Shown: positions 3,028 to 29,009, counted from the stretch's first letter. The stretch: DNA of 64,000 bases from Tetramitus jugosus (GCA_937625935.1 OW569380.1:186001-250000); one strand, 5' to 3'. The notes: generated by a model from the letters alone, not told the origin. Translations and numbers: made by a program.

Positions 3028-3109
3028 TGCATGCGGTGAGATTTGAACTCACGCATCCGGAGATATCCGAACTTGAGTCGGACGCCTTAGACCACTCGGC
3101 CACGCATGC
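3028..3109 (-). tRNA. tRNA-Leu(CAA)
   Basis: Reverse complement GCATGCGTGGCCGAGTGGTCTAAGGCGTCCGACTCAAGTTCGGATATCTCCGGATGCGTGAGTTCAAATCTCACCGCATGCA: 7-bp acceptor stem, A and B boxes, CAA anticodon, long variable arm, T6 terminator at 3019..3024. Confidence 0.97.
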
Positions 3110-3148
3110 TTCTTGCATTATTTCATTTGTCTATTGTGATGTGTGATT

Positions 3149-3165
3149 GGCTCAAAAACGCAGAA
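3149..3165 (+). repeat. Left target-site duplication of retrotransposon copy A (GGCTCAAAAACGCAGAA)
   Basis: Exact 17-bp copy at 6628..6644, directly after the poly(A) tail. Confidence 0.95.
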
Positions 3166-6100
3166 TGACGGACAATAACCTTTTCGATGTGAACGAAAAG
3201 CTGGGTACTGAGAGGTTCCACACCTTCTACAAGAAGGGCTCCTCTTCACGCATTGACACAGTATGGTGCAACAGAGCCGCCCTTGAAGATATAGAAGCAG
3301 TGAGAATGTACACTCAAAATGGTGTAGGCAGTGATCATGTTCCCACACTGTTGGTAGTGGAAACTGATAAGCACACTCCAACCTTAAGTGAACGCACGTC
3401 GTATCGCTTTCCAAAAGATAGGAGGGATCCTGGGTGGGTGGATTATGCAAAAAACGTTGTTAGTAAGTTGAAGAGAGGGTGGATTCAGGACTCTAACGAT
3501 GTAGATTCACAATGTGAACTTATCACCAGCACCATTCTTGAGCAGGCCCAGAAATTCCGTGATGTGAAAGCAACAAAAACATGGAGACAGAGTAGAAGGG
3601 AGAGAAGACTATTGAAACATAGAGCTTTGTTGATGAAATTTATGTCTCACCACGTATGGTGCTCCAAGCTGGACCGGATCTGCTCGTCCACCGGCAAGAA
3701 TGAACCAAGAGTCGATAGAGTATTGAGTACACTCAAATACATAAATGATTCACTCCACCAAGCAAGGGCGAAGAAGGCAACACAGAAGTACAGAAAGTGG
3801 GAGTGGGTGGCGAGAACGTCTGAATTCAGTGACCCGTCTAGATTTTTCTCTGCTGCCTCTGCAAAGAAGAGTAGTAGAGTCCGCCTTGCAAGGGTCACCA
3901 AAAACGGTATGCAGTACACAGATCCTCATATAGTTGGTGAAGTAGCAGCTGACTACTTCGAAGAGGCATTCAAGAAGGATGAAGCTAGCATGGGCTTCCT
4001 TGCACTGATGGATAGTCACAGCGATAAACACAAACTGAGGGCGGCTATCCAACCGTTCAAGACAGAAGAAGTCGCGGAAGCAATCAGATGGCTAAGGAAC
4101 AGGAAATGTCCAGGTGCTGACGGTGTTCATAACGAGATGGTCAAACTTCCTCGCACCAAGAAAAGAGACTTCAGGTGGGACTTGGCGGAGATCCTCTGCG
4201 ATTTCTTCAACAACATCACTGCTACAGGCAAGTTCCCCAGAGCTTGGAAGGAGTGTGTGATCATCCCAGCCTACAAGAAAGGGGACGTCACACGACCAGA
4301 GAACTATCGTCCTATTTGCCTTCTTAGTTCTTTGTCTAAGCTTTACACTAAGCTTTTGAATCAACGCATCTCGAAGGCGGCAGAGGAAGGAGGTGTGTTT
4401 ACGAATGTTCAAGGGGGTGCAAGAAAATTTCGGGATATCAGGGAGAAACTCTCCTTGATAAGGGGTGTAATTGACTTTGCCAACCGTCATGACAAGCAAT
4501 TGTACCTCCTATTAACGGATATCTCGAAGGCATTCGACTCGGTGCCGCACAACGCTATAGAAGCAGTGTATAGATTCTTTGGTTTTCCTGAGGGAATAGT
4601 GAAACTTGTCAGTGGTATGGTGCGTGACAATCATGCGCGGGTCTTGACCTCTTCGCTTTCGAGAAGGTTTAGAATAGGGAAGGGTACGAGACAGGGTGAT
4701 TCACTATCACCCACTACCTACATCCTGGTTCACCAAGTGGTTTTGTTATATGTGAAACATCAAGTGAAGGGATTTGGTGCAATGACTCAGAGACTGTGGA
4801 ATGCAGCATACGTGGATGATTGCAATCTGTTCGCTGAGTCCAGAGCGGGCATAGAAATTGCCGCCAAAGCAATGTCTACTGCTTTGGGCTGGCTTCGAAT
4901 GACAATGCATCCTGACAAATTGGAACTCTACGTCAGAAAAGTTGACAGTAAGTCATCGAACGACATTAATGTGGACGGCACCAGGGTGGTAGGGAGAAAC
5001 AACAGGCATGTGTTTCGTGCGCTGGGTCTGTACACGAATCTTAAGGGTGCAACCCAGAAACAGAGAGAACAAGCCTGGCAAAAGGCACAGAGGGTGGTTG
5101 TTAGGCTCAAAATAATGAGACTCACCGCAAGACAAGTGAGTCGGGTGGTGAACACGTGCATCCACCCTATATTTGCCTATGCATCAGAGTTTACTGACTG
5201 GACAGCTGAGTGGTTGGACAAAGTTAATGCACTGGGAAGATCCCTAGTGAAGTTCGGGTCGAAAGCAATGAAGATGTTCCCGACTGAACTGCTATCTATC
5301 GGCTCTGAGCTCGGATCAGTAGGACTAAAAGACATAGAAGAGACAATTGCTACACAGACTGGATGGTTCGTGTTCTCAATGATCAACGGTAAGAGAGACA
5401 CTGAAGCTCGTAGGCTGTTTCTTGACACGCTTGAGGATATTAAGCACCACCAAACATTCCAACAAGAGAATGTATTTCAGTCAAGCAACAGACTCGAGAA
5501 TGTCGCGTCAACTTACCACAAGTGGTGTGCCATCAGGATGCACACACATGGGATCAGATTAACTGTAAGTACGACTACGCAGTGTGATGAGTGCAGACTG
5601 GCAAGGTACGTGCCATCCACCACCCTCAAGAAACTCTACCTCTCAGGTATAGTAAGCCGCAATCAACTGCTTGTGGAGGAACAGCCTCTGTGCTTCAAAG
5701 AATTCAAGCAACTATTCCCAACATGTAAGATAGGTGCAAATTCGCACCAAATACTGAACATTTTGATTGCGCAGATGAGGACATGTCAGTGTCCCATAAA
5801 CCAAAACTCTACTAAAGATGAACCGGCTCTGTACAAGGGTAACCTCCGAGTCGAGAGTAGGGAACATCTGCAGTCCTTGTTCGATCAGGAGAGGAATGCA
5901 CGAGTAGAGAAGAGCGAGCGTTGGTGGATTCAAAAGGATGCCAACTACAGTGGAGCAGACTTCTGCTTTCTCAAGTACCCACACTCTGTTGACAGAAGGC
6001 TGGAATGGTTCCAGCTTCAGGTCAGAAGTGGGACTCTACATACGGAGGATGTTGTTCGATGTCTGTACAACACTTGTGATGAGCCCACAAAGTGTGTCTG

Positions 6101-6497
6101 GTGCAACAAAGAGCCCGAAAGTGTGTTGCACTGTCTCATTCGATGTCCAAGGGCTGTGTATGCAAGAAGGTGTCTAGCCTTGACAGTCAGTAAGGAGCTG
6201 ATCAGAATGGGCGTGTCAGCCAACAGCTGTATCGACATATGGTTCGATAATGTGAGACTGAAGGACGGCAAGATGGAAAAGCGTCCTTTGCGATGGACGA
6301 GCAGAGAATTTCTGAAAGGTATGATGGGCATAGAAACAAATGCCATCGAAGATGTCACCAACGGACTGGTAGAGATTGGGATCAAAACAGCAGAAGCCAG
6401 TAAGAAAGCTAAAACCTATGTGAATGGGGTGAAACGGAGATGTCTCACGACTCTCCTTCACCTCTTCACAACAACAAAAGCGAAACAACAGCAATGA
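3165..6497 (+). CDS. ORF2 of copy A: C-terminal part of APE endonuclease + reverse transcriptase + CCHC knuckle
   Basis: SRIDTVW and SDH (APE end); CPGADG, YRPICLL, DISKAFDSV, GTRQGDSLSP, YVDD (RT); CVWC..ESVLHCLIRC; uninterrupted frame. Confidence 0.93.
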   Translation: MTDNNLFDVNEKLGTERFHTFYKKGSSSRIDTVWCNRAALEDIEAVRMYTQNGVGSDHVPTLLVVETDKHTPTLSERTSYRFPKDRRDPGWVDYAKNVVSKLKRGWIQDSNDVDSQCELITSTILEQAQKFRDVKATKTWRQSRRERRLLKHRALLMKFMSHHVWCSKLDRICSSTGKNEPRVDRVLSTLKYINDSLHQARAKKATQKYRKWEWVARTSEFSDPSRFFSAASAKKSSRVRLARVTKNGMQYTDPHIVGEVAADYFEEAFKKDEASMGFLALMDSHSDKHKLRAAIQPFKTEEVAEAIRWLRNRKCPGADGVHNEMVKLPRTKKRDFRWDLAEILCDFFNNITATGKFPRAWKECVIIPAYKKGDVTRPENYRPICLLSSLSKLYTKLLNQRISKAAEEGGVFTNVQGGARKFRDIREKLSLIRGVIDFANRHDKQLYLLLTDISKAFDSVPHNAIEAVYRFFGFPEGIVKLVSGMVRDNHARVLTSSLSRRFRIGKGTRQGDSLSPTTYILVHQVVLLYVKHQVKGFGAMTQRLWNAAYVDDCNLFAESRAGIEIAAKAMSTALGWLRMTMHPDKLELYVRKVDSKSSNDINVDGTRVVGRNNRHVFRALGLYTNLKGATQKQREQAWQKAQRVVVRLKIMRLTARQVSRVVNTCIHPIFAYASEFTDWTAEWLDKVNALGRSLVKFGSKAMKMFPTELLSIGSELGSVGLKDIEETIATQTGWFVFSMINGKRDTEARRLFLDTLEDIKHHQTFQQENVFQSSNRLENVASTYHKWCAIRMHTHGIRLTVSTTTQCDECRLARYVPSTTLKKLYLSGIVSRNQLLVEEQPLCFKEFKQLFPTCKIGANSHQILNILIAQMRTCQCPINQNSTKDEPALYKGNLRVESREHLQSLFDQERNARVEKSERWWIQKDANYSGADFCFLKYPHSVDRRLEWFQLQVRSGTLHTEDVVRCLYNTCDEPTKCVWCNKEPESVLHCLIRCPRAVYARRCLALTVSKELIRMGVSANSCIDIWFDNVRLKDGKMEKRPLRWTSREFLKGMMGIETNAIEDVTNGLVEIGIKTAEASKKAKTYVNGVKRRCLTTLLHLFTTTKAKQQQ

Positions 6498-6627
6498 CGT
6501 TCTGCGAGCGTCATTGGGAATTAATCAGAAGACCAAGAGCCATCGCTCAATGAGCGATGGTTGATGAATATGTATTGATAATAAAGTGAGCAACCGCAAT
6601 GGTTGTATTAAAAAAAAAAAAAAAAAA
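3166..6627 (+). mobile_element. Non-LTR retrotransposon copy A (L1/Tx1-like), 5'-truncated within the endonuclease domain, upstream of tRNA-Leu(CAA)
   Basis: RT ORF, short 3' UTR, A18 tail at 6610..6627, perfect 17-bp TSD; lacks ORF1 and the N-terminal part of the APE domain compared with the copy at 23917. Confidence 0.95.
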
Positions 6628-6644
6628 GGCTCAAAAACGCAGAA
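6628..6644 (+). repeat. Right target-site duplication of copy A
   Basis: Identical to 3149..3165. Confidence 0.95.
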
Positions 6645-6648
6645 AAAA

Positions 6649-7811
6649 CGGAATCACATGTCTGGTGATTCAACAAATTTGGTGAAGGAATACGGCAACA
6701 GCCGTTATGCAGTGTGGACCACTGCACGGAAAGGCTCTAGGCCAAGTGACAGAGAGGTGGTCATTACTGGCAACGGTAATGGTGTCTCTCAGTCATCTTT
6801 GGCAAGAAAGATAGGAGAGGAGTTTGGTGACTGGCTCAATCGAGTCCAGGTCATCAAGAGGAAAGGCCAGCAACGCTTTGTTGCATGGGTGACGGTCAAG
6901 GGTGACCGCATCTATGAGTTTGTAGAGCTATTCAACAAACAGAGGAGGATTGGCAACAGCACTGCTGCACCCAAGCGCAGTGTTGATTGCACAAGAAAGG
7001 TGGTCGTCCATGGCATGAAGAACATGTCAGTGGACGACATCAAGAAGCTACTGGGACCTGAGAAGGTTGCCAGTGTGCTACAGAAGCGTGACACTGCTTT
7101 CGTGGTCATGGGTGATGAAACCTATGCACGGGCAGTGCTCAGCGGAGAGAACAAGGTCAAGGTCACGGTCATTCGATACGCCGAGAGACCACATGATCCT
7201 CTCAAGGCTGTCAACAAGAGGTTGACGAAGATGTACGAGGAGCTGCTGATGGTGGTTGACGGACTGCGTCGACAGGTCACAGAACTCACCAAGGAATTGG
7301 CAAAGACAAAGGGTCAAGGGGGCAACAAACAGGTTCCAATGCCGGAACAAGAATTGCCCAAGCCACTGCTAGGATGGAGACTCCTGAGCTAGTGGAGGCA
7401 GGAGAACAGAGGACTGTAGCAACACCACTGCCATCAGTGCCTTTTGTGCAGCTCAGTGCGGAGAACCGGCGAATTCTGGAGCAAGTGAATGCCACTTCTC
7501 CAGTGTTCGCCAGAGTGAAAAAGGAAATTGCTGCATTGGCTCTAGCTGCTGCACGCAAAAGGTATGGTTTGACTGAGGACGAACCAGTCATTGTGGATGT
7601 GGATGATGACTCTGAAAAGGAGATTCAGAGTCCACAACTCAATGACAACAAGAAGAGGAGTGCTAGGGTCACACTGGGTGATCTGATGAGCAACAAAGCC
7701 CAAAACAAGAAAACAACAAAAGATGGCTCTGTGTCCATCACTCACAAAACAAGTCAATAAATGAGCAATCGTGCGCAAGCACACATGGTTGTATGGAAAA
7801 AAATAAAAAAA
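6649..7811 (+). mobile_element. Non-autonomous ORF1-only retroelement copy B
   Basis: ORF1 homologous to 23927..25039, followed directly by the family 3' motif (TAAATGAGCAATC...ATGGTTGTAT) and an A-rich tail at 7797..7811, then a diverged copy of the target site at 7812..7848; no ORF2. Confidence 0.85.
6658..7760 (+). CDS. ORF1 of copy B (RRM-like domains + coiled coil), split by a frame change near 7374-7392
   Basis: YAVWT..REVVITG..RVQVIK..IYEFVELFN..VVHGM..TAFV matches ORF1 at 23927; 6658..7392 plus 7374..7760 total about 367 codons versus 370 for the intact ORF1. Confidence 0.8.
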
Positions 7812-7849
7812 TGTGTGATTCGCCCACAAAAAGAAGTCGCAGAAAAAAG

Positions 7850-8512
7850 GTGCGAGTGCGATTGATAATGGTGTGCATGCAGAATTCACAACCATGAAAT
7901 ACGTGTTGTCACCAAAACTACTCGCTCATACTGTGATAGTTGTTGATTGGACAGGTATGTACCAAGTGCAATTCTCAAGAAGCTTTACCAAGCTGGTATC
8001 ACAAACCGTGCGCAACTAATGGTTGAAGATCACCCTCTGTGTCTGAAGGAATTCAAACATATCTTCCCGCCTGCAAGGTCGTTTGAGGTGCTGAAAGTGG
8101 GTGTGGATGTGCCGAAAGGAAGAGGTCAGTCGAAAGTGCAGAACTGGACTTACACCAGGGTAATCTGTATGTGGAAAGTAGATCTACACTCTATTCGACC
8201 AAGAAAGAACTGCAAGAGTAGATGAAGACGAGCGGCGTTGGCTACAGCGGGCAGCAAATAACAGTGGCTCAGATTTTAGCTTCCTCAAATACCCCCATGG
8301 TATAGACAGGAAGCTGGAATGGTTTCAGTGGAACACTACACACAGCAGAGGTTGTACGGTATCTATACAACATTGGTGATGTGTAGGTCATGTGTAGCTG
8401 GTGTCAGAGTTAGCCCGAGAGTGTGCTCCACTGTTTGATCAGTTGCTCGGAATGGGTTATTGCGAGCCATGGTGAAACAGTAAATGAAGTGAACAACCTA
8501 TGCAACCGGTTT
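7850..8512 (+). mobile_element. Degenerate 3' remnant of the same retrotransposon family (copy C)
   Basis: RYVPSAILKKLYQAGITNRAQLMVEDHPLCLKEFKHIFP matches copy A RYVPSTTLKKLYLSGIVSRNQLLVEEQPLCFKEFKQLFP; further fragments YSGSDFSFLKYPHGIDRKLEWFQ and ESVLHCLISC with stops/frameshifts; decayed 3' motif near 8480-8512. Confidence 0.88.
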
Positions 8513-8521
8513 CTTCCCGAA

Positions 8522-9035
8522 TCAATTGTTCTTGCAGCATTGTAAGGTTATCTGGATGTTGACCTTGACAGAGTGCCATATGTGAATGAAAAGCAGGAAT
8601 GTCAAACGATTGAATTTGCAGAATTTCGATTTCGATAGATTGGTAACATCCACTGCGGCTTTGTTCATCGCTTCCTTAATCTCGTCTTCGTAGTAGTGCT
8701 CCAAGTGGGTGAGCATCTTTCCACACCAAACCTCTAATGCTAATTCATCTCCCAAACAATCCAGAGCAGGGATGTATATGACAAGCCAGCCAGTCTGAGA
8801 ACAATATTGGGTCATAAGGAATAGTAAACTAGCTCCCTCTGCTCCATAGGGCATGTCCCAAACTATCGATCATGTTTTCAGTGTCAAATTGACGCGACCA
8901 ATCATCAATGATGGCAAAGAGATAAAGAGCATCCTTTCTGAGCACCAAGGTGAATTGGCCATCTTGATTTGGCTTCAATTCTGTTGTAAATAAAAGAAAC
9001 ATGATGGTTAAAGTATGATCATTAGAAAGTCCCAC
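8522..9035 (-). pseudogene. Frameshifted fragment of a possible P-loop NTPase (DAP3/AAA-like)
   Basis: Two overlapping ORFs; YGAEGA-S resembles a damaged Walker A, followed by GWLVIYIP. Confidence 0.35.
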
Positions 9036-9245
9036 TAAATCCGATAATTGAAAAGTATTGGTTGGCTACCGGAATCTTGGCTCAGTCATCACTTTTGCTT
9101 TTTTGTTGGTCTATTGGATTCATTGGCGCGTGTCTTTCGTGACGAGTCTGGCTATCTTTTCCTTGGTCTAAAAATCAAGCCCTAACTTTTTCGTGTTTTG
9201 CTGGGGAACCAATTTACTGCATTCGAACAAAACATGCACTTATAT

Positions 9246-10481: not shown

Positions 10482-10768
10482 TTTTCGTGCTTTGTGTGGA
10501 ATTGTCGGATGATCGGTGAATCTGTGTGAAAATTCTATTTTTGATTGTTCGAATTCAATTAGGTTATAAATTGTATGGGATTGTTGTTTACAACGGGAAG
10601 TCTGAAAAAGAATCCTTGCTTTCAGGGTGTCAATTATTAGAAAGGGCTTCTCTTCACAGAAAGTTGTTCTTCTTTTATCAGTTGGAGGATACAGACTGAA
10701 CAAGAAGAAAACAGATACAACCGATACTTTCGCACAAACAACAACAGTTAAGAACAAATCGTTTAACA

Positions 10769-16390: not shown

Positions 16391-18835
16391 TTATTGGAAC
16401 AAGTCGCCATTAGGATTCATGACATCAGCGAGTTCGACTGGATCAGCGTTGTGCTTCAAGCAATAGTCATCATGCTTTCTGAGCAAATATTGGAAGTATG
16501 GAATCTTGATTGGTGCATCTACGGCAATTCTAGGATTGTATGGAGTAACCTTGTTGATTGCTTCAATACAAATGTCGAATCTGCTGGCCTTGTTAGCTGT
16601 CAACATTCTGAATGGAGTAGTGGTTGTACCTTCTTCAATGTAACCGAGCACTTCGAATCGTTGAATATGCTTTCTACCAAAGAGCAATTGCTTGACAGCG
16701 GATGGATAACCATGGAAGTTAAAAATACATGGCTTATCATTGGTAAGCAAAGCATTGAACAGCACTTCGGTCAAACCGTGAGGATGTCTTCCATTGACAT
16801 CCAAAATCATCAAATCGGTAATGTTGACAACACGAACAGTCATTGCTGGGCAGTGTTTCTTCAACAATTGAGCTGCTGCGATCACTTCGGTTGTGGTTTC
16901 ATTACCAATACCAACAAGAACTACATCTGGTTCAACACCATCTTGCTCAGTACCTGCCCACTTCCAAATGGAAGCACCAGCTCTGCAATGTTCAACTGCT
17001 TCATCCATTGACAACCAGTTGGATCCTTCATTCTTTGAAGAAATAATCAAGTTAATGTAATCCTTACTCCTCAAACAGTGGTCCAAGGTGGAAACCAAGC
17101 AGTTGGCATCTGGAGGCAAGTATACTCTGACAACATCACTCTTCATGTTGATCAACGTATTGATGAAACCAGGGTTCTGGTGACTGAAACCGTTGTGTTC
17201 TTGTCTCCACAATGTACTGGAGGCAATATAGTTGAAGGAGGCAACAGGATTTCTCCATGGAATCTCCTTTGAAATCTTCATGAACTTTGCATATTGGGTC
17301 ATCATTGTGGCAACAATGCCCAAGAAAGCTTCATAACTTGGGAACAAAGCAAATCTACCGGTCAAAATGTATCCTTGCATCATTGCTTGGCATGTGTGCT
17401 CAGACAAGATTTCAATGACACCGCCATCATCATTGGCAGTAGGTTCCCACCATTGATAGTTACGGTGAGTGGTCTTGAATACACCATGCAGCTTATTGCT
17501 CTCCAACTCATCTGGACTGAAAATCTTGAATCTAGTCAAGTTCTTCTCAAACACCTCAGCCATATAGTTACCGCCTTGTTGGGTAGCGCTGACTGCTAGC
17601 TTCCCTCTCGAGTTGTTATCAATTTTAACAGTGTAGTTGAAGATGTCAGGCAAATCCATTGGCTTGAACTTTGGTTGAACGTGTCTATTGGCACCCATTC
17701 TTCTGTGTCCAGTTGGGCAAGTGTCACGAATCACTTGCTTGATAGTACCATTCGCATCGAACAAATTATCAACGTTGTATGATCTCAACCATGATTCCAA
17801 GAGTGATAATTCCTCAGGATCTTCACGTACCTTTGGTGCAGGAACTTGATGACTGAGGCAGTTGCCCTCAATCTTCTTGCCATGTAATTGCTTAATGCCA
17901 GTCCATCCCTTTGGTGTCTTCATAATGATCATTGGCCATCTTGGCTTAAAGATTGGCTTTCCACTTCTGGCTGCTTGTTGAATCTTTCTAATCTCAGAGT
18001 AAGCCCACTCCATTGCGTCCATCATATCAATATCGACTCTTGCCAAATCATTACCAACAATTCTTGGTTGATAGCCATAACCAATGAACAAGTGAATCAA
18101 ATTCTTGTCACTCATGGTACCGTACAGAGTTGGAGAAGAAATCTTGTAGCCGTTCAAGTGAACAATAGGGATCACAGCACCACTTGCTCTTGGATCGATA
18201 AACTTGTGTGCATGCCATGCAGTAGCAGTTGGTCCAGTCTCACACTCACCATCACCAACGAGAACAGTTGTAATGAGATCAGGGTTGTTCAAAACGGAGC
18301 CATAAGCCACACCTAGAGCATAACCCAATTCACCACCTTCGTGCAAAGTTCCTGGAAGCATTGGATTCACGTGACTTGGGAATCCACCATGTCTAGAGAA
18401 ATCTCTAATCAACAAACTGACTCCCTTTTCATCAAACTCATACTGTGGATAATGCTCAGTCAATTCACCAGAAATGTACAAGTTGGCAACCACAGCTGGA
18501 GCACCGTGACCTGGACCCAAGATAAAGATCATATCCACATCTTCGTGCTTCCTGATCAAGTAGTTGCAATGGCCATAGACCAGATTAATACCAGGACAAG
18601 TACCCCAATGACCCAACAATCTAGTTTTGATGTGATCCACAGTCAATGGCTCTCTCAACAAGCAATTCTTGTTCAAGTAGATTTGAGCAGCAGACAAATA
18701 GTTGGCACAGTCTCTTTGGAGCTTCAAGGCATCCAAATCCTTCTTTTGTTCCTCTGTAAGGGAACGTTCCACCTGATCAATGTTGGTAAAGTGGGCATCA
18801 ATTGGAGAATCTACCTCTTGGTCTACGTTGCTCAT
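16391..18835 (-). CDS. xfp: Xylulose-5-P/fructose-6-P phosphoketolase
   Basis: RLLGHWGTCPG, GPGHGAP, HEGGELGY, GDGECETGP (TPP motif), FSPDELESN, ILSEHTCQ, QEHNGFSHQNPG, EEGTTTTPF. Confidence 0.97.
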   Translation of the reverse strand: MSNVDQEVDSPIDAHFTNIDQVERSLTEEQKKDLDALKLQRDCANYLSAAQIYLNKNCLLREPLTVDHIKTRLLGHWGTCPGINLVYGHCNYLIRKHEDVDMIFILGPGHGAPAVVANLYISGELTEHYPQYEFDEKGVSLLIRDFSRHGGFPSHVNPMLPGTLHEGGELGYALGVAYGSVLNNPDLITTVLVGDGECETGPTATAWHAHKFIDPRASGAVIPIVHLNGYKISSPTLYGTMSDKNLIHLFIGYGYQPRIVGNDLARVDIDMMDAMEWAYSEIRKIQQAARSGKPIFKPRWPMIIMKTPKGWTGIKQLHGKKIEGNCLSHQVPAPKVREDPEELSLLESWLRSYNVDNLFDANGTIKQVIRDTCPTGHRRMGANRHVQPKFKPMDLPDIFNYTVKIDNNSRGKLAVSATQQGGNYMAEVFEKNLTRFKIFSPDELESNKLHGVFKTTHRNYQWWEPTANDDGGVIEILSEHTCQAMMQGYILTGRFALFPSYEAFLGIVATMMTQYAKFMKISKEIPWRNPVASFNYIASSTLWRQEHNGFSHQNPGFINTLINMKSDVVRVYLPPDANCLVSTLDHCLRSKDYINLIISSKNEGSNWLSMDEAVEHCRAGASIWKWAGTEQDGVEPDVVLVGIGNETTTEVIAAAQLLKKHCPAMTVRVVNITDLMILDVNGRHPHGLTEVLFNALLTNDKPCIFNFHGYPSAVKQLLFGRKHIQRFEVLGYIEEGTTTTPFRMLTANKASRFDICIEAINKVTPYNPRIAVDAPIKIPYFQYLLRKHDDYCLKHNADPVELADVMNPNGDLFQ

Positions 18836-21062: not shown

Positions 21063-21679
21063 CTATTGGAGAGAATGTTTCTTTAGTAGCTACTTAGACG
21101 CGCACTATCTGTTTGTTCTCTGTTCGAACTCTATGGCGCTTCACTGGTCATGAAGCTTACACAATTGGGTTTTGATTCGTTGTAAAATTCGTGTTCGAAG
21201 TGACCTGATTGTTCTTTGTCAACACTGTCGCATCTGAATGCTTGACTATTGGATCATGCAAAATCAAGCTCTCTGGCAACAATTGAACAAAATTGTCATT
21301 CAAATGTCTCACTCGATAGTAGTGCTCGTGGTCTCTGCTGAATGGATTGGATGGAGCTCTATTCTCTACAATGTACACATGAGGTGCATCTGCAAACTTT
21401 CTAATGGTGCCAGTCAATGTCATTGCTATCTTGTATCGCTTGAATGTAGGTTGGTTCTTTGTTGTAGTTTGTGGTTACGTGTTGGTTCGTTTATTTGTGC
21501 CAATGTGAGCTCGAATATAAATTTGAATTGAGGGTGTGTGGTGGTACCTTGGTGATTAGTCTGAATTATCTGCCAGGTGTCGCTCCACGTTTCCTAAAGA
21601 CAAAAAAAGGCAATGGATTCAATCATTTGCAATCAAAAAGATCGCCGCTGGATGGAAACTCAAAAAAACAACTAAAGGC

Positions 21680-21702
21680 AGGCCCAACCGAGAATCGAAC
21701 CC
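21680..21702 (-). pseudogene. 3' fragment of a tRNA gene (T-loop/B box + acceptor 3' strand; Gln-like)
   Basis: Reverse complement GGGTTCGATTCTCGGTTGGGCCT followed by a T7 terminator at 21662..21668; 5' two-thirds missing; isotype is a guess from the CTCGG-TNGGNCC-T end. Confidence 0.6.
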
Positions 21703-21719
21703 TTACCTTTGTCTCTATT

Positions 21720-22030
21720 TTTGCCGCTTTGGAGAAATCACTACGCAGATGGAATCATCAAGATCGTCGATAGTACTAACTTCATGTGGCCCATGCCGAG
21801 GAAGTCGAGCAGAGAGTACCTCATGGGAATGATGGGATTAGAGAACGACGCTGTCGACCAGGTGGCAGATGCGCTGATGAAAAATGGGATGAAACAAGAA
21901 GTAGCGCATCGAAAGGCCCGTAGTTTTGTGTGCACACAAAAGCAGAATTGGCATGTGCAACCAGCTTGTAGTAACAGGAGAACTCCATGAAGAATTGGAT
22001 TGGCTGGCTCAACAACTAAAAGTATAGGGC
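21720..22030 (+). mobile_element. Remnant of ORF2 C-terminus of the same retrotransposon family (copy E)
   Basis: RKSSREYLMGMMGLENDAVDQVADALMKNGMKQEVAHRKARSFV aligns with RWTSREFLKGMMGIETNAIEDVTNGLVEIGIKTAEASKKAKTYV (copy A) and RKTSKEYMLGMLGIE (copy D). Confidence 0.85.
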
Positions 22031-22052
22031 GAACAGAGAACAATAATTTTGA

Positions 22053-23630: not shown

Positions 23631-23780
23631 TGTTTTTGTTTGTTCCGTTCACAAGTTTTGACGTGGTGAAATGTGAAGGAAGACTTCGGACAAAATTCTA
23701 GTTCCCATTCCACAAAGTACATGCACGACGAAGAACTCAATGAGCCAATGTAACAGGAACCAAGGAAAAGGTCAAAACTC

Positions 23781-23860
23781 TGACGAGGGCGGGATTTGAA
23801 CCCGCGCCCCGAAGGACTGCGGCCTTAACACAGCGTCTTAGACCACTCGACCACCTCGCC
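23781..23860 (-). tRNA. tRNA-Leu(AAG)
   Basis: Reverse complement GGCGAGGTGGTCGAGTGGTCTAAGACGCTGTGTTAAGGCCGCAGTCCTTCGGGGCGCGGGTTCAAATCCCGCCCTCGTCA: cloverleaf, AAG anticodon, long variable arm, T4 runs downstream. Confidence 0.97.
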
Positions 23861-23901
23861 ATTTCGATAATTTTGCTCCGAAAGTAGACCAGCTCCAGTT
23901 T

Positions 23902-23916
23902 TTTGGAATGAATTTC
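23902..23916 (+). repeat. Left target-site duplication of copy D (TTTGGAATGAATTTC)
   Basis: Exact 15-bp copy at 28995..29009, right after the poly(A). Confidence 0.95.
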
Positions 23917-23926
23917 AAAAAAACAG

Positions 23927-25039
23927 ATGCAAACAAACGAAATCATTCCATCCTCTCAAGGGGTGCGCGAGTATGTCAAAAACAGGCATGCGGTATGGAC
24001 TGCACTTCCCACAGGAGGTACAGTCAACAAACGTGAAGTGGTCATTAAGGGTAGTAACCAACAGGGCTCGGTCATGGAGGTTGCGAGGCATGTCGCAAGC
24101 AGGTGTTCACCTTGGGCCACTAGAGTCCAGGTGATCAAATGGGAGAAAGATGAGTACATTGCATGGCTCAACATCAAGAAAGACGAGATCTATGAGTTTG
24201 TGGAGCATTTCAACACAACAAAGTGTGTGAAAAATGCCAAGGCATTCATCAAGAGAGGATTAGACAATGACAAGAAGCTTGTTATGCATGGTGTAGAAGG
24301 AAAAACTACGGAGGAGATTGCAAGACTTGTTGGAACTGAGAAAGTACAACAAGTGGTGAAGAACAGTAATACGGCCTTTGTTACAATGAGGTCACCAACA
24401 TACGCGCAAGCACTGATTGAAGATTCTCGTCTCAGTGTGAAGGTGAGCAAGTACACTGAAAGAAGGGAGGAACCAATCATGGTGGTTAACCGAAGATTGG
24501 AAACCACTAGAAAACAACTCACTCTAATGGTCGAGTCTCTTACAAGAAAAATGAACAAGTTGGAACTGGAGTTGAATAAGCTCAAAGTAAATGCTTCTAT
24601 TCAGCAAGAGGAGCCACAAAGGAAGATACAGAAGAGGACGACTAAGAAGCGAGCATCGAACCAGTCAAGAGACGGGGCTGAAGCAACACAAACCACTGCG
24701 GAGCTAGCAGTGGAAACAGATAATTGGGACTCAGTTTTACTTCCTGATGTAAGAGACGATATGCTAGATGATCTAGGCCACTCCCCTCAAAGACGTAGAA
24801 GTAAGAGCACGAGTGCACTAGGAAGCAGGTCAGCTTTCGAGGAACTGGCCGAGATGTGTCTCGTGAATGGCGGAGACACTCCTGTGAAGAGTAATGGCAA
24901 GAGGTGCTCCACCACGCAACTGGATGAACAAAATCAGAGAAAGAGGCAATTGGTCAACACTCCGATCAGATTGCCGTCTTTAAGAAGCAGAAGGGCACCT
25001 GAAGCGGAAGTGCCGAGGAGAGTTCCGAACCAATGTTAG
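23927..25039 (+). CDS. Retrotransposon ORF1 (two RRM-like domains, coiled coil, disordered basic tail)
   Basis: Position before ORF2; homology to 6658..7392; KLVMHGV..TTEEIARLVG..TAFVTM (RRM-like); heptads LETTRKQLTLMVESLTRKMNKLELELNKL. Confidence 0.9.
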   Translation: MQTNEIIPSSQGVREYVKNRHAVWTALPTGGTVNKREVVIKGSNQQGSVMEVARHVASRCSPWATRVQVIKWEKDEYIAWLNIKKDEIYEFVEHFNTTKCVKNAKAFIKRGLDNDKKLVMHGVEGKTTEEIARLVGTEKVQQVVKNSNTAFVTMRSPTYAQALIEDSRLSVKVSKYTERREEPIMVVNRRLETTRKQLTLMVESLTRKMNKLELELNKLKVNASIQQEEPQRKIQKRTTKKRASNQSRDGAEATQTTAELAVETDNWDSVLLPDVRDDMLDDLGHSPQRRRSKSTSALGSRSAFEELAEMCLVNGGDTPVKSNGKRCSTTQLDEQNQRKRQLVNTPIRLPSLRSRRAPEAEVPRRVPNQC

Positions 25040-28000
25040 AAATCATGTGGTACAATGTCAACGGACTGCCTGGTAAATCCGTCGACATACTCAACATGTT
25101 GGAGCAGGAGGACATCGATGTGCTTTTGCTGCAAGAAACAAGAATATTACACCAGGTGCAACTGACGCGGTTGCAAAAACAATTGGCAGCACTGAATTAT
25201 GCAATCCTATGCGAATTTCCCAGTCGATATCTGGCTACGATTATCAACACGAAGAACGTCACCAGTTATGGCAGTGTCCACAACGGGGAACGCCTCCAAG
25301 TGGTGAGAGTAGAATGTGCCAGTGAAACCATTTACATTGCTAATCATTACGGTCCACACAAGATTGATGTTCCCCACTACAACTACGTCAAAGAAACAAT
25401 GAGCAGTATCGCATCATCTGGTAAGGTCCTATTTGGAGGTGATCATAATGCAGTGGTCGCTAAGGAGGACAGAACATCGGGTCGCAAAGATCCGAATACG
25501 AATTGTCTGATCAGCTCCATGTATAGTTGTAACATGCAGGATATCAACCGGGTGTTAGGAGTGCATAAATTCCACACCTACTTCAAGAGGACTATGTCAT
25601 CTAGAATTGATTCTACATGGGCCAACAAGGCAGCTCTAAGTGTCGTCCGAAATATAGAAGCGTTCACAAGAAACGGGGCTCTGACTGATCACATACCAAC
25701 GAAGGTGTCAGTGGAAGTGGAACACAAGACTGATGGCTGTGACAAGGATGATAGAACAAGCATGGTCTTCCCCAAGAACAAACTGGACAGTAGATGGGCG
25801 AACTACGCCACTGAAGTGCTGTCTGATCTGTCTAAGCAACGGATAGAGGATATGAGTGACCCACAAACACAATGCGAAATGTTGACCAAAGTCCTGGTTA
25901 CTCGGGCTGTGGAGTTCTTTGGCGAACAGAGCACTACAAAGCGCTGGGTGGATAATAGGCGTGTGAGAAGACTCATCCAGAGCAGAAAACTTGTGCTCGA
26001 TTATCTAGTCAGCGGTACTGTCGGCGAGCATTTGTGTAAAGTACTCACTAACTATGGTGGACAAACAGAAATAGGAAGAGAGTCAGTATGGTCGACACTG
26101 GGAATAATCAATCAGAGATTGTATCAAGAGAGGACTAGACACACGTGTAAGAGATTCAGACGGTGGGAGTGGGTTGCAAGAACATCAGAGTTCGTAAACC
26201 CGAGTAAGTTCTTCTCTACGGCAAGCGCAAAGAAATCTAACCGAATCAGGCTTAACACCATTGAAGAAGAGGGCATGACTCACACCGACCCAGAAAAGGT
26301 AAGCAGCAAGGCGGCAGAATATTTTGAGTCGGCCTTCTCACATTCCTATGCGGACATGAGCTATCTTAGTGAGCTTGAAGCTCCCAGAATGGAGGAAATG
26401 ATTAAGAAGGAGTATACGGAGATCACGGTGGAAGAAGTTCGTAATGCAGTTAAATGGCTGAGGAATAGGAAATGCCCGGGGCCTGATGGCATTCACAACG
26501 AAATGCTCAAAATGCCAGTGACTGAAAGCAGAGATTACAGTTGGGAACTAGCAGAAGTGCTGGCCCACCTTTTCAACAACATACTGGTGAGTGGGGTGTT
26601 CCCCACCGTGTGGAAGGAGTGTACGATTATTCCGGCGTACAAGAAAGGGAGTGCACAAGACATTGCGAACTACAGGCCCATCTGCCTCCTCAGCTCAGTG
26701 GCTAAGTTGTTCACCAGATTGCTTAACACCAGAGTGTCTAAGGCAGCGGAAGCGGCTTCGATATTCACAAATACTCAAGGAGGAGGTAGGAAATTCAGGG
26801 ACATCAGAGAGAAGCTATCGATTATGAGGGGTGTTATCGACCATGCAAACAGGAACGATAGCCAGTTGTATTTGTTGCTGACCGATATTGCGAAAGCTTT
26901 TGATTCTGTCCCACACAACGCCATCAGGGAAGTGTACTCGTTCTTTGGATTCCCAAGTAGTATCGTCGGACTGGTACACGATATGGTTACAAACAATTGG
27001 GCCCGAGTGATGACGGGAACATTATCGCGACGTTTTTCAATAGGTAAGGGTACAAGGCAGGGTGATTCGTTGTCACCAACTACGTACGTTCTAGTCCATC
27101 AAACTGTGCTACTGTATACTGCCAGGCTTGCTAAGGGTTACCCGGCAGGGACTCAAAACATTTGGAATGTTGCGTACGTGGACGATTGTAATCTCATGTC
27201 AAGTGATAGAAATGACATCGAGATGACTGCAAACCGCATGAACGAGGTTTTGGGTAAGTTAAAGATGACCATGCACCCCACCAAGCTGGAATTGTATGTC
27301 AGAAAACATGGAAAAACACCATCAGACCATAATATAATGGTCAATGGAGTGGTTGTGGCTGCAAATGGAAGTAGGAAAGTTTTCAGGGCACTAGGACTCT
27401 TCACGAACCTAAATGGTTGCACTGTCAAACAGAAAGAGCAAGCCCGAGACAAGGTGGAAAGGGTCATCAAGCGACTCCACATTATGAGACTAACTGCCAG
27501 ACAAGTAGCGAGGATCGTCAACACATGCATCCACCCGGTGTTTCTTTACGCTTCCGAGTTCACTGAGTGGGGGGCAGGGTGGATCAACCGAGTGAATCAT
27601 ATAGGCAAAGCATTGATCAAACGGGGTTCTGTTGCAATGCGGAGGTACCCCTCAGAATTGTTGCATGTGGCGTGCGATAATGGTGGCTTCGGTCTCCGTA
27701 GATTTGAGGAATCATTGCTGGTGAACACTGCTTGGTTCATCATCAACATGCTGAAAGGGAAGCATGATGGCGAGGCTCACAGACTGTTGTTGGATACGCT
27801 TGAGGAGATCAGGCATCTACAAACATTCCAGGTAGAGAATGTATTCCAATCCAACAACAGGATTGAGCTCGTCGCACATAGCTATCTTAAGTGGTGTGCT
27901 GTCCGTATGCACACCAACCACCTCACTATTTCTTGTGGGAATGAGGTCAACTGTCTGAGTTGCAATCTGGCACTCTCTCAGCCAAATGACATCATCAAAA

Positions 28001-28884
28001 GGTTGTTCAAGGTGGGAATAGGGCTGAGGAGTCAATTGACAGTGGGTGGAAAGTGGATCAGGCATAGCGAATTGATCAAAAGGCATGGAAATTTTGGAAT
28101 TAGTTCTCGCAGATACAAGTACTTGACAAGTGACCTTGAAATGCTACAGTGCAATGGAAATCACGAGCATTCAGCCGACACTACCCCAAGGTTAATGTAC
28201 AATGATAGTTTTGAGGTCGTAGAGAAGGAACAGTTGTGGCGAGTCTTCTTGCGACGACATAGGGATAGGGTGAAAGAGGAGAAGGTATGGTGGATACAGT
28301 CTAAGTGTTTAGGAGGTGCTGTAGATTTTAAATTTATGAGATGCCCTTTCAGGGTCGACCGTGCACTGGAATGGTTTGTGGCTCAGGTGAAAAGTCACAC
28401 AATTCACACTAAGGCCGTTGTCCAACATCTCTATGGAGTAGTGGACATGGATACGCTATGTCCCAAATGCAAATTTGAACAGGAAACGGTGTTACATTGT
28501 CTCGTTAGATGCCCGGTGGCGATAATGGCCAGAAAACTGTTGGTGAAGGAAGTTTCCACCAAGCTGAGTAAAATGGGTCTTCACAAGGACCAAAGAGTAG
28601 ACATGTGGTTCGACAACCAACGATGGAGCAACGGCGCATTACTAGTCAATAAGCGGAGGAAAACTAGCAAGGAATACATGCTTGGCATGTTGGGTATTGA
28701 AACAAGGGCGCTGAAACAAGTGATCAAAGGACTGACGAAGAGTGGAATAGAGAAGAAGAAGGCAAGGGAGAAGGCCCAACAATTTGTCGATCATACAAAG
28801 AGGAGATGTGTGGAGGTGATGCGACGCCTCTTCACGAGTTCAAAGGAGATTGCTGGTTGGTTGCTAATGCTCTACGAGCATTAG
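25033..28884 (+). CDS. Retrotransposon ORF2: APE endonuclease + reverse transcriptase + CCHC zinc knuckle
   Basis: WYNVNGL, DVLLLQET, GGDHN, SRID, TDH (APE); CPGPDG, YRPICLL, DIAKAFDSV, GTRQGDSLSP, YVDD (RT); CPKC..ETVLHCLVRC. Confidence 0.97.
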   Translation: MLEIMWYNVNGLPGKSVDILNMLEQEDIDVLLLQETRILHQVQLTRLQKQLAALNYAILCEFPSRYLATIINTKNVTSYGSVHNGERLQVVRVECASETIYIANHYGPHKIDVPHYNYVKETMSSIASSGKVLFGGDHNAVVAKEDRTSGRKDPNTNCLISSMYSCNMQDINRVLGVHKFHTYFKRTMSSRIDSTWANKAALSVVRNIEAFTRNGALTDHIPTKVSVEVEHKTDGCDKDDRTSMVFPKNKLDSRWANYATEVLSDLSKQRIEDMSDPQTQCEMLTKVLVTRAVEFFGEQSTTKRWVDNRRVRRLIQSRKLVLDYLVSGTVGEHLCKVLTNYGGQTEIGRESVWSTLGIINQRLYQERTRHTCKRFRRWEWVARTSEFVNPSKFFSTASAKKSNRIRLNTIEEEGMTHTDPEKVSSKAAEYFESAFSHSYADMSYLSELEAPRMEEMIKKEYTEITVEEVRNAVKWLRNRKCPGPDGIHNEMLKMPVTESRDYSWELAEVLAHLFNNILVSGVFPTVWKECTIIPAYKKGSAQDIANYRPICLLSSVAKLFTRLLNTRVSKAAEAASIFTNTQGGGRKFRDIREKLSIMRGVIDHANRNDSQLYLLLTDIAKAFDSVPHNAIREVYSFFGFPSSIVGLVHDMVTNNWARVMTGTLSRRFSIGKGTRQGDSLSPTTYVLVHQTVLLYTARLAKGYPAGTQNIWNVAYVDDCNLMSSDRNDIEMTANRMNEVLGKLKMTMHPTKLELYVRKHGKTPSDHNIMVNGVVVAANGSRKVFRALGLFTNLNGCTVKQKEQARDKVERVIKRLHIMRLTARQVARIVNTCIHPVFLYASEFTEWGAGWINRVNHIGKALIKRGSVAMRRYPSELLHVACDNGGFGLRRFEESLLVNTAWFIINMLKGKHDGEAHRLLLDTLEEIRHLQTFQVENVFQSNNRIELVAHSYLKWCAVRMHTNHLTISCGNEVNCLSCNLALSQPNDIIKRLFKVGIGLRSQLTVGGKWIRHSELIKRHGNFGISSRRYKYLTSDLEMLQCNGNHEHSADTTPRLMYNDSFEVVEKEQLWRVFLRRHRDRVKEEKVWWIQSKCLGGAVDFKFMRCPFRVDRALEWFVAQVKSHTIHTKAVVQHLYGVVDMDTLCPKCKFEQETVLHCLVRCPVAIMARKLLVKEVSTKLSKMGLHKDQRVDMWFDNQRWSNGALLVNKRRKTSKEYMLGMLGIETRALKQVIKGLTKSGIEKKKAREKAQQFVDHTKRRCVEVMRRLFTSSKEIAGWLLMLYEH

Positions 28885-28994
28885 CAACTACTTGAATCAA
28901 TAATGACGGCATTCTGCCGTCACGAAACCGATACAGAGAATCAACAAAGAAGTAAAATGAGCAACCAATGGTTGTATTTAAAAAAAAAAAAAAA

Positions 28995-29009
28995 TTTGGA
29001 ATGAATTTC
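28995..29009 (+). repeat. Right target-site duplication of copy D
   Basis: Identical to 23902..23916. Confidence 0.95.

Follow-up and report, generated by a model that had tools for sequence, protein, structure and literature searches.

Two LINE insertions lie upstream of tRNA-Leu genes

The window, a 64-kb stretch of DNA analyzed over its full length, harbors two APE-RT elements with perfect TSDs, each placed head-to-head upstream of a different tRNA-Leu gene (Table 1), as described in the first-pass annotation. Element 2 is intact and its TSD, TTTGGAATGAATTTC, has only two exact matches in the window, compared with 0.06 expected by chance. Its 5' UTR comprises 10 nt, placing the ORF1 ATG 10 nt past the junction, and its 3' UTR contains AGTAAA and a hairpin (28961-28979) followed by a 15-nt poly(A) (28980-28994). 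The ORF2 fragment of element 1 begins at residue ~163, includes the RT domain and shares 49% identity with ORF2 of element 2 (tblastn). A hairpin (6590-6609) and an 18-nt poly(A) (6610-6627) form its 3' end, and its TSD, GGCTCAAAAACGCAGAA, present on either side, has a chance expectation of 0.03 matches in the window. Both elements are oriented away from the tRNA, with TSDs starting 40 and 41 bp and 5' junctions lying 56-59 bp upstream of +1. The values given previously were 40 and 42 bp for the TSDs and 57 bp for both junctions. No further family copies were found in the window by tblastn, in agreement with the earlier reading, and a tRNA-Met gene (42503-42575) carries no family insertion upstream.

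The target of element 1 is not naive DNA. The element inserted into the 5' leader belonging to an earlier, ORF1-only copy, which resumes on the far side of the element at 6645-7812, and the locus is hence a stack; the 5' TSD copy of element 1 doubles as the leader start of the older copy. This X-type copy is composed of a leader, a frameshifted ORF1, a short 3' UTR with a hairpin and an A-rich tail, and its own TSD is probably TGTGTGATT (3141-3149 and 7813-7821). The decayed remnants at the outer end of the stack include a direct repeat, D2 (8194-8328), with a 70% match to 5880-6014. An association of all other remnants with tRNA genes, claimed initially, does not extend to the ORF2 remnant at 21799-21930, next to which Rfam detected no tRNA even at E ≤10. 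Only the B-box-like motif GGTTCGATTC is present there, spaced and oriented as would suit a target gene of this remnant; the motif may be all that is left of a tRNA gene with its +1 ~46 bp from the remnant.

Table 1 Features of the insertion loci within the 64-kb window.
Feature	Position	Strand	Evidence or remark
tRNA-Leu(CAA), Pol III target gene of stack 1	3027..3109	-	ARAGORN; Rfam tRNA model 59.8 bits
Element 1 TSD, 5' copy, GGCTCAAAAACGCAGAA	3149..3165	+	40-56 bp upstream of tRNA-Leu(CAA) +1
Element 1, subfamily C, 5'-truncated	3166..6627	+	Pfam RVT_1 1.7e-25; tblastn
Element 1 TSD, 3' copy, GGCTCAAAAACGCAGAA	6628..6644	+	Repeat of 3149-3165
Older ORF1-only (X-type) non-autonomous copy	6645..7812	+	ORF1 tblastn 38% identity; sequence read
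Oldest decayed remnants, outer end of stack 1	7822..8500	+	Leader-like start and ORF2 C-terminal fragment
B-box-like motif GGTTCGATTC	21692..21701	-	2 matches in window, 0.46 expected by chance
Short ORF2 C-terminal remnant	21799..21930	+	tblastn q1209-1252, 45% identity, E 4e-7
tRNA-Leu(AAG), Pol III target gene of element 2	23780..23861	-	ARAGORN; Rfam
Element 2 TSD, 5' copy, TTTGGAATGAATTTC	23902..23916	+	Exact repeat
Element 2, subfamily A, full-length, intact, 5078 bp	23917..28994	+	
Element 2 ORF1, 370 aa	23927..25039	+	AF2 model, Foldseek, alignment of 12 ORF1s
Element 2 ORF2, 1283 aa	25033..28884	+	APE endonuclease, RT, Cys/His-rich C-terminal region
Element 2 TSD, 3' copy, TTTGGAATGAATTTC	28995..29009	+	Exact repeat

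Family structure and encoded proteins

With two ORFs, a poly(A) tail, variable TSDs, common 5' truncation and no LTRs, the family is an APE-type LINE. Five subfamilies (A-E) were distinguished, with seven copies retaining both ORFs intact. Element 2 and a full-length copy on another contig (L002) share 99.25% nucleotide identity, and judging from its sequences the family is recently active. The 5' UTR measures only 10-30 nt and the hairpin-bearing 3' UTR ~110-185 nt; a repeat scan revealed no module shared between the two. A conserved 3'-terminal hairpin, GCAAC-loop-GTTGTAT, directly precedes the poly(A) and was identified at 26 sites in 264 kb compared with none in the control. Its sixth pair covaries (C-G, T-A, A-T), and the hairpin probably marks the RNA for the family's own RT.

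The ~1.2 kb X-type structure recurs at loci L005, L017, L011 and L014 with 85-96% identity. One structure, which retains leader, ORF1 and 3' end and lacks ORF2, is therewith present at at least five loci, all in the same Pol III-upstream niche as the presumed helpers. We infer that X-type copies are mobilized in trans, where the 3' hairpin would let the 1.2 kb derivative ride along. HAL1 (half-L1) elements of mammals are likewise ORF1-only, non-autonomous LINE derivatives devoid of ORF2; sharing the Pol III-upstream niche of putative helpers sets the X-type copies apart from them.

The ORF1 product is predicted to carry a pair of RRM-like domains followed by a long coiled coil and to end in a basic tail that is disordered. 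Its AF2 model reaches pLDDT values of 78-92 per 10 residues across residues 11-220, and Foldseek matches it to proteins with tandem RRMs, among them HuR, nucleolin and NONO/SFPQ (E ~1e-5). ORF2 combines an N-terminal APE domain (Pfam Exo_endo_phos, 1.9e-5) with a subsequent RT domain (RVT_1, 4.7e-24) and sub-threshold zf-RVT matches (E 0.0024-0.076), and Pfam detected no RNase H in it. A PDB profile search returned L1 EN and R2 RT, L1 EN being closest to the APE domain among solved structures, and the best Foldseek match of the ORF2 model was full-length human L1 ORF2p (E 3e-31, ~1200 aligned columns), at a TM of only 0.35 and a model pLDDT of 65. In element 2, the two ORFs overlap by 7 nt, ORF2 being shifted to the -1 frame and starting at an ATG of its own that overlaps the stop codon of ORF1; for subfamily E a 4-nt overlap is suggested by coordinates alone. 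From this arrangement, translation of ORF2 after ORF1 looks like termination-reinitiation.

Genome-wide association with tRNA and 5S rRNA genes

The genome examined comprises 26.35 Mb at 42% GC and is highly compact, its ORFs being long and its spacers short. An unbiased sample was obtained by picking 20 places by ORF2 protein similarity alone. In 18 of these a tRNA or 5S gene is situated at the 5' side of the element, invariably on the opposite strand, and the remaining two are devoid of a recognizable Pol III gene, with only a B-box-like motif at L004 and an unknown ~95-nt unit at L020. None of the 20 places has a Pol II promoter as target. Both U6 genes examined are free of insertions, a number too small to weigh much.

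Family 3' ends amount to ~251 genome-wide compared with one in a reversed-pattern control. Such an end is located at most 7 kb upstream and on the opposite strand of 17 out of 53 tRNA genes (~1.8 expected, Poisson P 8e-12) and of 15 out of 47 5S genes (~1.6 expected, Poisson P 1.5e-10), the latter being chromosomal and dispersed. The three mirror configurations apply to 0-2 tRNA genes and 1-4 5S genes. These counts refer to the best-scoring 53 tRNA and 47 5S genes with coordinates, which is why ~85% of the 251 3' ends have no assigned gene and some of them may lie away from Pol III genes. Collectively, these data extend to the whole genome the tRNA association in a single orientation that had been noted in the window.

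Insertions occur at a fixed offset irrespective of target sequence

Junctions were measured at 17 independent insertions, located at Leu, Arg, Asp, Glu, Lys, Val, Gly, Tyr, Ser and Asn tRNA genes, at three intron-containing tRNA genes and at one 5S gene (locus L015), and cover at least 13 tRNA species and one 5S gene with a common offset and orientation. All 17 fall within one positional window, TSDs starting 32-45 bp (median 41) and 5' junctions lying 43-61 bp (median 55) upstream of +1. Poly(A) tracts at the junctions measure 15-29 nt and 5'-truncated copies 1.0-3.8 kb. Each junction is flanked by a TSD of 12-22 bp, all of which differ and are unrelated in sequence, and the TSDs and flanks of the 17 sites yielded no nick-site consensus or motif beyond some A-richness. 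As junctions share offset and orientation while TSD sequences differ, the cue appears to be position and not sequence, which supports the proposal made from the two window elements.

The first-strand nick, deduced from the poly(A)-side TSD edge, is placed on the tRNA-sense strand 32-45 bp upstream of the mature 5' end; at certain sites runs of A leave its position uncertain by as many as 6 residues. The second nick lies 12-22 bp farther from the gene, so that the element 5' end faces the gene at 43-61 bp. At the single 5S site the nick is found at 34 bp compared with the tRNA median of 41; this gap approximates the length of a pre-tRNA leader, and the transcription start may hence be the reference point for the distance. 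TRE5-A likewise inserts at a shorter distance from 5S than from tRNA genes (PMC5911963). Nick offsets at tRNA genes further differ between subfamilies, with non-overlapping ranges of 32-33 bp for D and E and 39-45 bp for A, B and C. The shift maps onto a single branch of the ORF2 tree, which fits a ruler set by the protein.

A conserved DNA sequence or shape, for instance a TATA-like tract or one rich in A, might be read by the endonuclease/RT without any contact to the transcription complex. Many targets are indeed A-rich, 10 of the 17 sites have A at -1 and -3 ahead of the TSD, and repeat insertions often land in the A-rich leaders of earlier copies. This A preference is, however, partly an artefact of letting the TSD begin where the poly(A) ends, and besides the lack of a common motif the offset stays constant at tRNA and 5S genes, which differ in their upstream sequences, and in unrelated leaders of older elements. 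A-rich tracts are moreover ubiquitous at 42% GC, yet mirror configurations are confined to 0-4 genes. We regard a sequence or shape cue as very unlikely.

Open or bent chromatin resulting from Pol III transcription (a nucleosome-free region, the TBP bend) would account for the equal targeting of tRNA and 5S genes in the place of a specific protein contact, and direct contact with the Pol III complex is itself a proposal. A ~13-bp window, an orientation that is strictly kept and a 9-bp shift between subfamilies are nonetheless finer than what open chromatin usually gives, and Pol II promoters of the same dense genome were untouched in the 20-place sample, making chromatin alone an improbable cue. 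Random insertion, with copies surviving only where they do no harm, upstream of Pol III genes, would draw on a gene-dense genome whose compactness implies strong selection against other sites. Selection, however, cannot produce an offset fixed within ±7 bp or a single orientation; downstream and same-strand configurations are nearly unused (0-4 genes), and the near-identical young copies (99.25%) already reside at the canonical position. We consider this explanation scarcely credible.

Proposed targeting mechanism

We consider it very probable that the family is an active, multi-subfamily APE-type LINE, which inserts at a fixed offset and orientation upstream of tRNA and 5S genes on a cue from the Pol III complex. 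Integration would proceed via target-primed reverse transcription (TPRT) upstream of tRNA and dispersed 5S rRNA genes, with the Pol III pre-initiation complex, rather than DNA sequence, as the putative cue. TFIIIB appears the most likely tethering partner, because it is common to tRNA and 5S promoters and asymmetric at the insertion position. By analogy with ORF1p of TRE5-A, for which binding to TBP, Brf1 and Bdp1 is described, the complex may be read by ORF1p, with its predicted tandem RRM, coiled coil and basic tail, and/or by ORF2p. Repeated insertions at a single site are observed as stacks; the TSD re-creates the target beside the gene, where later copies insert and displace older ones outward.

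Host, relatedness and comparison with known systems

HSP90 of the host groups with Naegleria, Willaertia and Acrasis (99/96 support). The host is thus probably a heterolobosean (Discoba) and, as suspected at the outset, not a dictyostelid. Among 1.84 billion representatives no close ORF2 relative was found outside the family's own lineage, the best full-length matches there reaching ~200-260 bits over ~900 positions, and the family sits on a branch of 3.6 substitutions/site.

The modelled ORF2p comes nearest to that of L1 in the order of its domains and, at the low TM given above, in its fold, and the predicted ORF1p, like that of L1, has an RRM and a coiled coil. Sequence identity nevertheless amounts to 15-16%, the ORF1p described here has two RRMs placed ahead of the coiled coil, insertion is position-specific in contrast to the loose TTTT/A site of L1, and 3'-end recognition looks stringent, given the conserved hairpin. 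Tx1-group LINEs, likewise APE-type with small-RNA genes as targets, reportedly hit multicopy RNA genes (Kojima and Fujiwara 2004), namely 5S (Mutsu), tRNA arrays (Dewa) and U2 (Keno). Elements of the Tx1 group and of R1/R2 type cut a defined sequence inside a gene or repeat, whereas the targets here are unrelated sequences outside intact genes, and a sequence-specific RNA-gene LINE was rejected on these grounds.

A close parallel in geometry is TRE5-A (DRE) of Dictyostelium discoideum, which inserts ~50 bp upstream with its 5' end towards the tRNA gene and also targets 5S genes (PMC3159450, PMC5911963), bearing out the TRE5-like arrangement noted initially. Both are non-LTR elements with two ORFs, an oligo(A) tail, frequent 5' truncation and an ORF2 of APE-RT-zinc-finger type, the zinc finger being putative in the present family; both insert slightly closer to 5S genes (PMC3159450, PMC5911963, PMC5006619), and occupancy of tRNA genes runs from about a third to 60%. 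True kinship with TRE5, ancient or by horizontal transfer, with targeting inherited rather than convergent, would be in line with the identical geometry, the order of APE, RT and putative zinc-binding region in ORF2 (PMC5911963), the -1 frame of ORF2 relative to ORF1 and a predicted L1-like ORF2p architecture, TRE5 being filed under L1 (PMC5911963). The hosts, however, belong to different supergroups, a probable heterolobosean versus an amoebozoan, and the ORF2 matches and long branch given above also weigh against it. The modular UTRs of TRE5 (A+B at the 5' end, B+C at the 3' end) are absent, the 5' UTR comprising 10-30 nt. In TRE5, ORF2 is reached by -1 frameshift; the ORF2 examined here, in the -1 frame too, possesses its own ATG over the ORF1 stop. 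The predicted tandem-RRM and coiled-coil ORF1p contrasts with a TRE5-A ORF1p described as of unknown function, and 5S targets are chromosomal and dispersed. Spaller et al. saw no TRE-like elements beyond dictyostelids (PMC5006619). Inherited targeting is unlikely in our assessment, and Pol III-upstream targeting is probably convergent with TRE5, which was compared by published description only.

A precedent for such convergence is NLTR-B of Polysphondylium pallidum, a LINE unrelated to TREs that independently gained TRE5-like positioning 39-64 bp upstream of tRNA genes (PMC5006619). It differs in containing RNase H and in carrying APE, RT and RNH in separate ORFs. tRNA-gene targeting by convergence is an established theme in compact genomes (PMC5006619). 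Yeast Ty3 and Ty1 also use Pol III genes as safe harbours, tethered by TFIIIB and by Pol III subunits, respectively (PMC5911963). Both are LTR elements that integrate via integrase in both orientations, Ty3 a few bp from the transcription start and Ty1 across a broad nucleosomal window, unlike the TPRT-type insertion in a single orientation ~40 bp out described here. Fixed-position safe-harbour targeting upstream of Pol III genes had until now been known only from social amoebae and yeasts, to which a probable heterolobosean can be added.

Elements and remnants in the window

ARAGORN and Rfam each place three tRNA genes in the window, and members of the family, APE-type LINEs with ORF1, ORF2, a poly(A) tail and TSDs, lie upstream of two of them. 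Element 2, the full-length subfamily A copy, has a 5′ UTR of 10 nt, an ORF1 stop overlapped by the ATG of ORF2, a 3′ UTR that is short and structured, and a poly(A) of 15 nt; its perfect 15-bp TSD has no further occurrence in the window. Element 1, a 5′-truncated subfamily C copy, is likewise bordered by a perfect TSD of 17 bp, which coincides with the first bases of an older copy directly behind it. This older copy likely has a 9-bp TSD of its own, and still older debris extends beyond it up to ~8500. As element 1, the older copy and the debris lie in tandem, at least three successive insertions have accumulated at tRNA-Leu(CAA), an arrangement termed a stack.

The first-pass annotation had found no copies elsewhere in the 64 kb, and tblastn indeed adds none. 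It had also assigned all remnants to tRNA genes, which holds for the older copy and the debris at tRNA-Leu(CAA), but not for the ORF2 fragment between the two elements, which adjoins no recognisable tRNA. A minus-strand tRNA start would fall ~46 bp from this fragment if the B-box-like 10-mer at 21692–21701 were its T-arm; since tRNA models do not recognise the region, the association is only suggestive. A second B-box-like sequence, GGTTCGATTC, has neither a tRNA call nor a nearby element remnant and may be a chance match, 0.46 being expected per window. Two further open reading frames of the window were noted: a full-length phosphoketolase (XFP_N, XFP and XFP_C, E 7e-140), for which horizontal acquisition is possible because the enzyme occurs mainly in bacteria and fungi, and a single ORF fusing a protein kinase domain with an F-box-like domain.

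Features of the window and of the compared loci (positions are those of the window unless a locus is named)
Feature	Positions	Strand	Remarks
tRNA-Leu(CAA)	3027-3109	-	ARAGORN, Rfam
Element 1	3166-6627		5′-truncated, first ORF2 residue ~163; upstream of tRNA-Leu(CAA)
Older copy behind element 1 (X-type)	6645-7812		leader, ORF1, 3′ hairpin, A-rich tail
Phosphoketolase	16391-18835	-	
ORF2 fragment	21799-21930		130 bp; tblastn
tRNA-Leu(AAG)	23780-23861	-	ARAGORN, Rfam
Element 2	23917-28994	+	complete non-LTR element, 5078 bp; upstream of tRNA-Leu(AAG)
Element 2 ORF1	23927-25039	+	370 aa
Element 2 ORF2	25033-28884	+	1283 aa; Exo_endo_phos, RVT_1 (Pfam)
Kinase/F-box-like ORF	39749-41926	-	725 aa
tRNA-Met(CAT)	42503-42575	+	ARAGORN, Rfam; no element adjoining
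B-box-like GGTTCGATTC	61468-61477	-	
X-type copy	L005 1018-2344		
X-type copy	L017 1075-2373		
X-type copy	L011 3354-4413		
X-type copy	L014 2991-3800		
Unit with terminal T-run	L020 7512-7640		~95 nt; G000:C16:364511-364639

As the first-pass annotation had supposed, the host is not a dictyostelid; it is very probably a heterolobosean of free-living habit. Its only usable placement comes from HSP90, a CTNNBL1 search having yielded metagenome relatives at 48% identity. The best named relatives of the cytosolic HSP90 are those of Willaertia (77%), Naegleria (75%) and Acrasis (74%), and a tree sampled from the top matches only groups the host and its metagenomic kin with heteroloboseans (99/96 support), separate from Euglena and the green plants. 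Near-identical DNA is present in groundwater, soil and freshwater metagenomes.

Genome-wide position and junction geometry

The host assembly comprises 26.35 Mb on 56 contigs, with the window at C37:186001-250000. A six-frame search with ORF2 yielded 505 first-look candidates and, from these, 38 scored matches of 42–100% identity, the best of which were sampled at 20 places including the window, with ORF2 similarity as the sole criterion. At 18 of the 20 places the element or stack has a tRNA gene on its 5′ side, on the opposite strand every time; at one locus (L015) the tRNA gene is accompanied by a 5S rRNA gene. The head-to-head insertion upstream of tRNA genes first proposed for the window thus extends across the genome, and the sampled copies are neither mostly remote from Pol III genes nor randomly oriented. 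At L004, a B-box-like GGTTCGAATCC alone faces the element, at a distance of ~43 bp plus half a tRNA length; neither this remnant nor those of the window are recognised by tRNA models. At L020, an intact subfamily E copy, its TSD clean, faces a unit of ~95 nt that begins with the A-box-like GGGGGGTTAGCTCA and ends in a T-run, the TSD edge lying ~28 bp upstream. No Rfam family matched this unit, and its only copies elsewhere are two partial ones on the same contig, at most 12 kb away. It is possibly an unannotated Pol III unit.

Junctions were measured for the 17 gene-proximal elements with both ends readable. The TSD starts 32–45 bp upstream of the mature 5′ end of the gene (median 41) and the 5′ junction lies 43–61 bp upstream (median 55), in line with the ~40 and ~57 bp read from the window; TSDs measure 12–22 bp (median 15) and poly(A) tails 15–29 nt. 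No common motif was found among the 17 targets save some A-richness at the nick, which arises partly from the definition of the TSD start, and the notion that position rather than sequence is the cue is thereby supported. The idea that the tRNA gene is itself part of the mobile unit was ruled out: the TSD separates gene from element, and at least 13 different genes are involved. Among short Logan contigs, no joint skipping an element was found.

An independent count made use of the 3′ end that all subfamilies share, GCAAC-loop-GTTGTAT immediately ahead of the poly(A). Searching the genome with four exact patterns detects 251 family 3′ ends compared with one for the reversed patterns, and a looser pattern gives 343 raw matches compared with four in the control. 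The 53 nuclear tRNA genes and 47 5S genes located by Rfam genome searches are part of the genome's complement, so that the majority of the 251 family 3′ ends are not tied to them. The expected configuration was defined as a 3′ end upstream, on the opposite strand and within 7 kb, with the three mirror configurations as controls. It was found at 17 of the 53 tRNA genes (mirrors 0, 0 and 2; ~1.8 by chance; Poisson P 8e-12) and at 15 of the 47 5S genes (mirrors 4, 1 and 2; ~1.6 by chance; P 1.5e-10), and at least three mirror matches are elements belonging to an adjacent Pol III gene. Occupancy is therefore about one third in both gene classes; neither of two U6 genes is occupied, a number too small to interpret. 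The 5S rRNA genes themselves, at least 47 near-identical copies, are single and dispersed over the chromosomes, not in tandem arrays and not on an rDNA unit. Contigs C54 and C56 share the same tRNA coordinates (941, 12773, 14364, 14438 and 44585) and are probably an organelle genome assembled twice.

Subfamilies, proteins and ORF1-only copies

In the ORF2 tree the family forms one clade of five subfamilies (A–E, 42–68% ORF2 identity among them), joined by a very long branch to the nearest outside sequences. Both ORFs are intact in seven copies, and element 2 is 99.25% identical over 5077 nt to a copy on another contig, which together indicate recent activity. ORF1p has no Pfam match; in its structural model, two RRM-like domains are predicted with confidence, a coiled-coil helix of ~45 residues comes next, and the basic, disordered tail contains the conserved motif GKR...K...P. 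Its Foldseek matches are tandem-RRM proteins. ORF2p has an APE domain, to which L1 EN is nearest among solved structures, and an RT; its C-terminal region is rich in Cys and His and matches zf-RVT below threshold. RNase H is absent. The best fold match of the ORF2p model, itself of moderate quality (pLDDT 65), is full-length human L1 ORF2p (E 3e-31), with R2 behind. A PDB sequence search appeared to favour R2 over L1, which is not meaningful, as no human L1 RT chain was among its results. The leader AAAAA(A)CGC, ~10–30 nt ahead of ORF1, is conserved and is the predicted transcription start. Besides the terminal hairpin, the 3′ UTR holds an AATAAA-like signal and one or two hairpins rich in GC. 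The terminal hairpin occurs at 26 sites in 264 kb versus none in the control (direct count of motifs and pairs), with covariation at its sixth pair.

X-type copies of ~1.2–1.3 kb consist of a leader, an ORF1 of up to 388 aa, the 3′ hairpin and poly(A). They share one structure at at least five loci with 85–96% identity, and other copies always stand between them and the Pol III gene. By their sequence they look like a non-autonomous derivative rather than independent deletions, and this derivative is likely a HAL1-like partner of the family.

A model for target-site selection

The TSD geometry fixes both nick positions relative to the gene and shows that the first nick falls on the strand with the sense sequence of the tRNA. 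Insertion duplicates the target beside the gene and the same site is reused in stacks, as at L002, where three layers have the TSD core AACGGAATC in common. The ruler would be the Pol III initiation complex. Internal promoters differ between tRNA and 5S genes, and TFIIIB upstream of the start is common to both; its asymmetric binding would explain the single orientation. At the one 5S site measured the nick lies at 34 bp, ~7 bp nearer than the tRNA median, as expected if the transcription start is the point from which the distance is measured. A 5S offset shorter than the tRNA offset is shared with TRE5-A, a tRNA-targeting LINE of dictyostelids (37–41 bp at 5S versus 40–54 bp at tRNA genes; PMC5911963).

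Among tRNA genes, the nick offset is 32–33 bp for subfamilies D/E (4 sites) versus 39–45 bp for A/B/C (12 sites), with no overlap, and in the ORF2 tree this shift falls on a single branch. It is more easily explained by a protein-encoded spacer than by a DNA cue. ORF1p of TRE5-A is described as binding TBP, Brf1 and Bdp1 (Chung et al. 2007, via PMC5911963). By analogy, ORF1p would be the first candidate for an adaptor, with ORF2p as the alternative.

Implications and comparison with known systems

The safe harbour at Pol III genes is a textbook example of how a transposon fits into a compact genome. To our knowledge, such targeting by LINEs is documented in dictyostelids only; here a well-populated, apparently active family occurs in a distant protist lineage. 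Taken jointly, the data can be read as Pol III-complex-guided LINE integration that arose independently in Discoba, the third supergroup after Amoebozoa and fungi, with ORF1p and ORF2p unrelated to TRE5, subfamily nicks about one helical turn apart and insertions that map Pol III loading sites, a composite view to which we assign an even chance. If it is true, intact copies and subfamily offsets form a natural allelic series from which one could map how a LINE gauges its distance to TFIIIB, and the insertions provide a free in vivo map of Pol III loading, including the unannotated L020 unit and solo B-box-like sites. The TRE5 geometry would then be a repeatable solution, probably dictated by the way TFIIIB presents DNA. 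The family further offers subfamilies that are diverged, intact and different in offset, suited to mechanism studies, a compact tandem-RRM ORF1p as candidate adaptor and a naturally position-specific TPRT system, relevant to directing LINE/R2-type insertion to defined sites.

Among 1.84 billion representatives no close ORF2 relative was found outside the family's own lineage, a word-indexed search for RT relatives returned four weak matches, and Atlas matches of the RT are generic RVT/APE clusters. The closest outside ORF2 fragment (P0130, 682 aa, 1038 bits) is on a 3.1-kb contig (L025; GCA_037189345.1, JBBCKJ010004670.1), and its source may be a close host relative or a contaminant. A distant APE-RT-RNase H LINE of another organism (P0140; L024 1-110, Logan ERR11571142) starts with AAAAACGCG, resembling the family leader, and the contig ends there. 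No tRNA was seen on the contigs of the distant relatives, which end at the repeat.

In behaviour, the family equals TRE5 (PMC3159450, PMC5911963) and matches NLTR-B of Polysphondylium pallidum, a LINE unrelated to TRE5 with the same geometry (PMC5006619). Spaller et al. did not find TRE-like elements outside dictyostelids (PMC5006619), and a 2018 review lists dictyostelid LINEs as the only Pol III-targeting non-LTR elements; full-text searches gave no report for Heterolobosea and no later "TRE5-like" family. We describe a family of LINEs inserted head-to-head upstream of Pol III genes and do not place it in the TRE5 family proper, of which its RT may be a distant relative. Unlike TRE5-A, it lacks UTR modules and has only a minimal 5′ UTR, an ORF1 stop overlapped by the ORF2 ATG, a tandem-RRM ORF1p and 5S targets that are chromosomal and dispersed. 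Convergence with TRE5 is the more likely origin.
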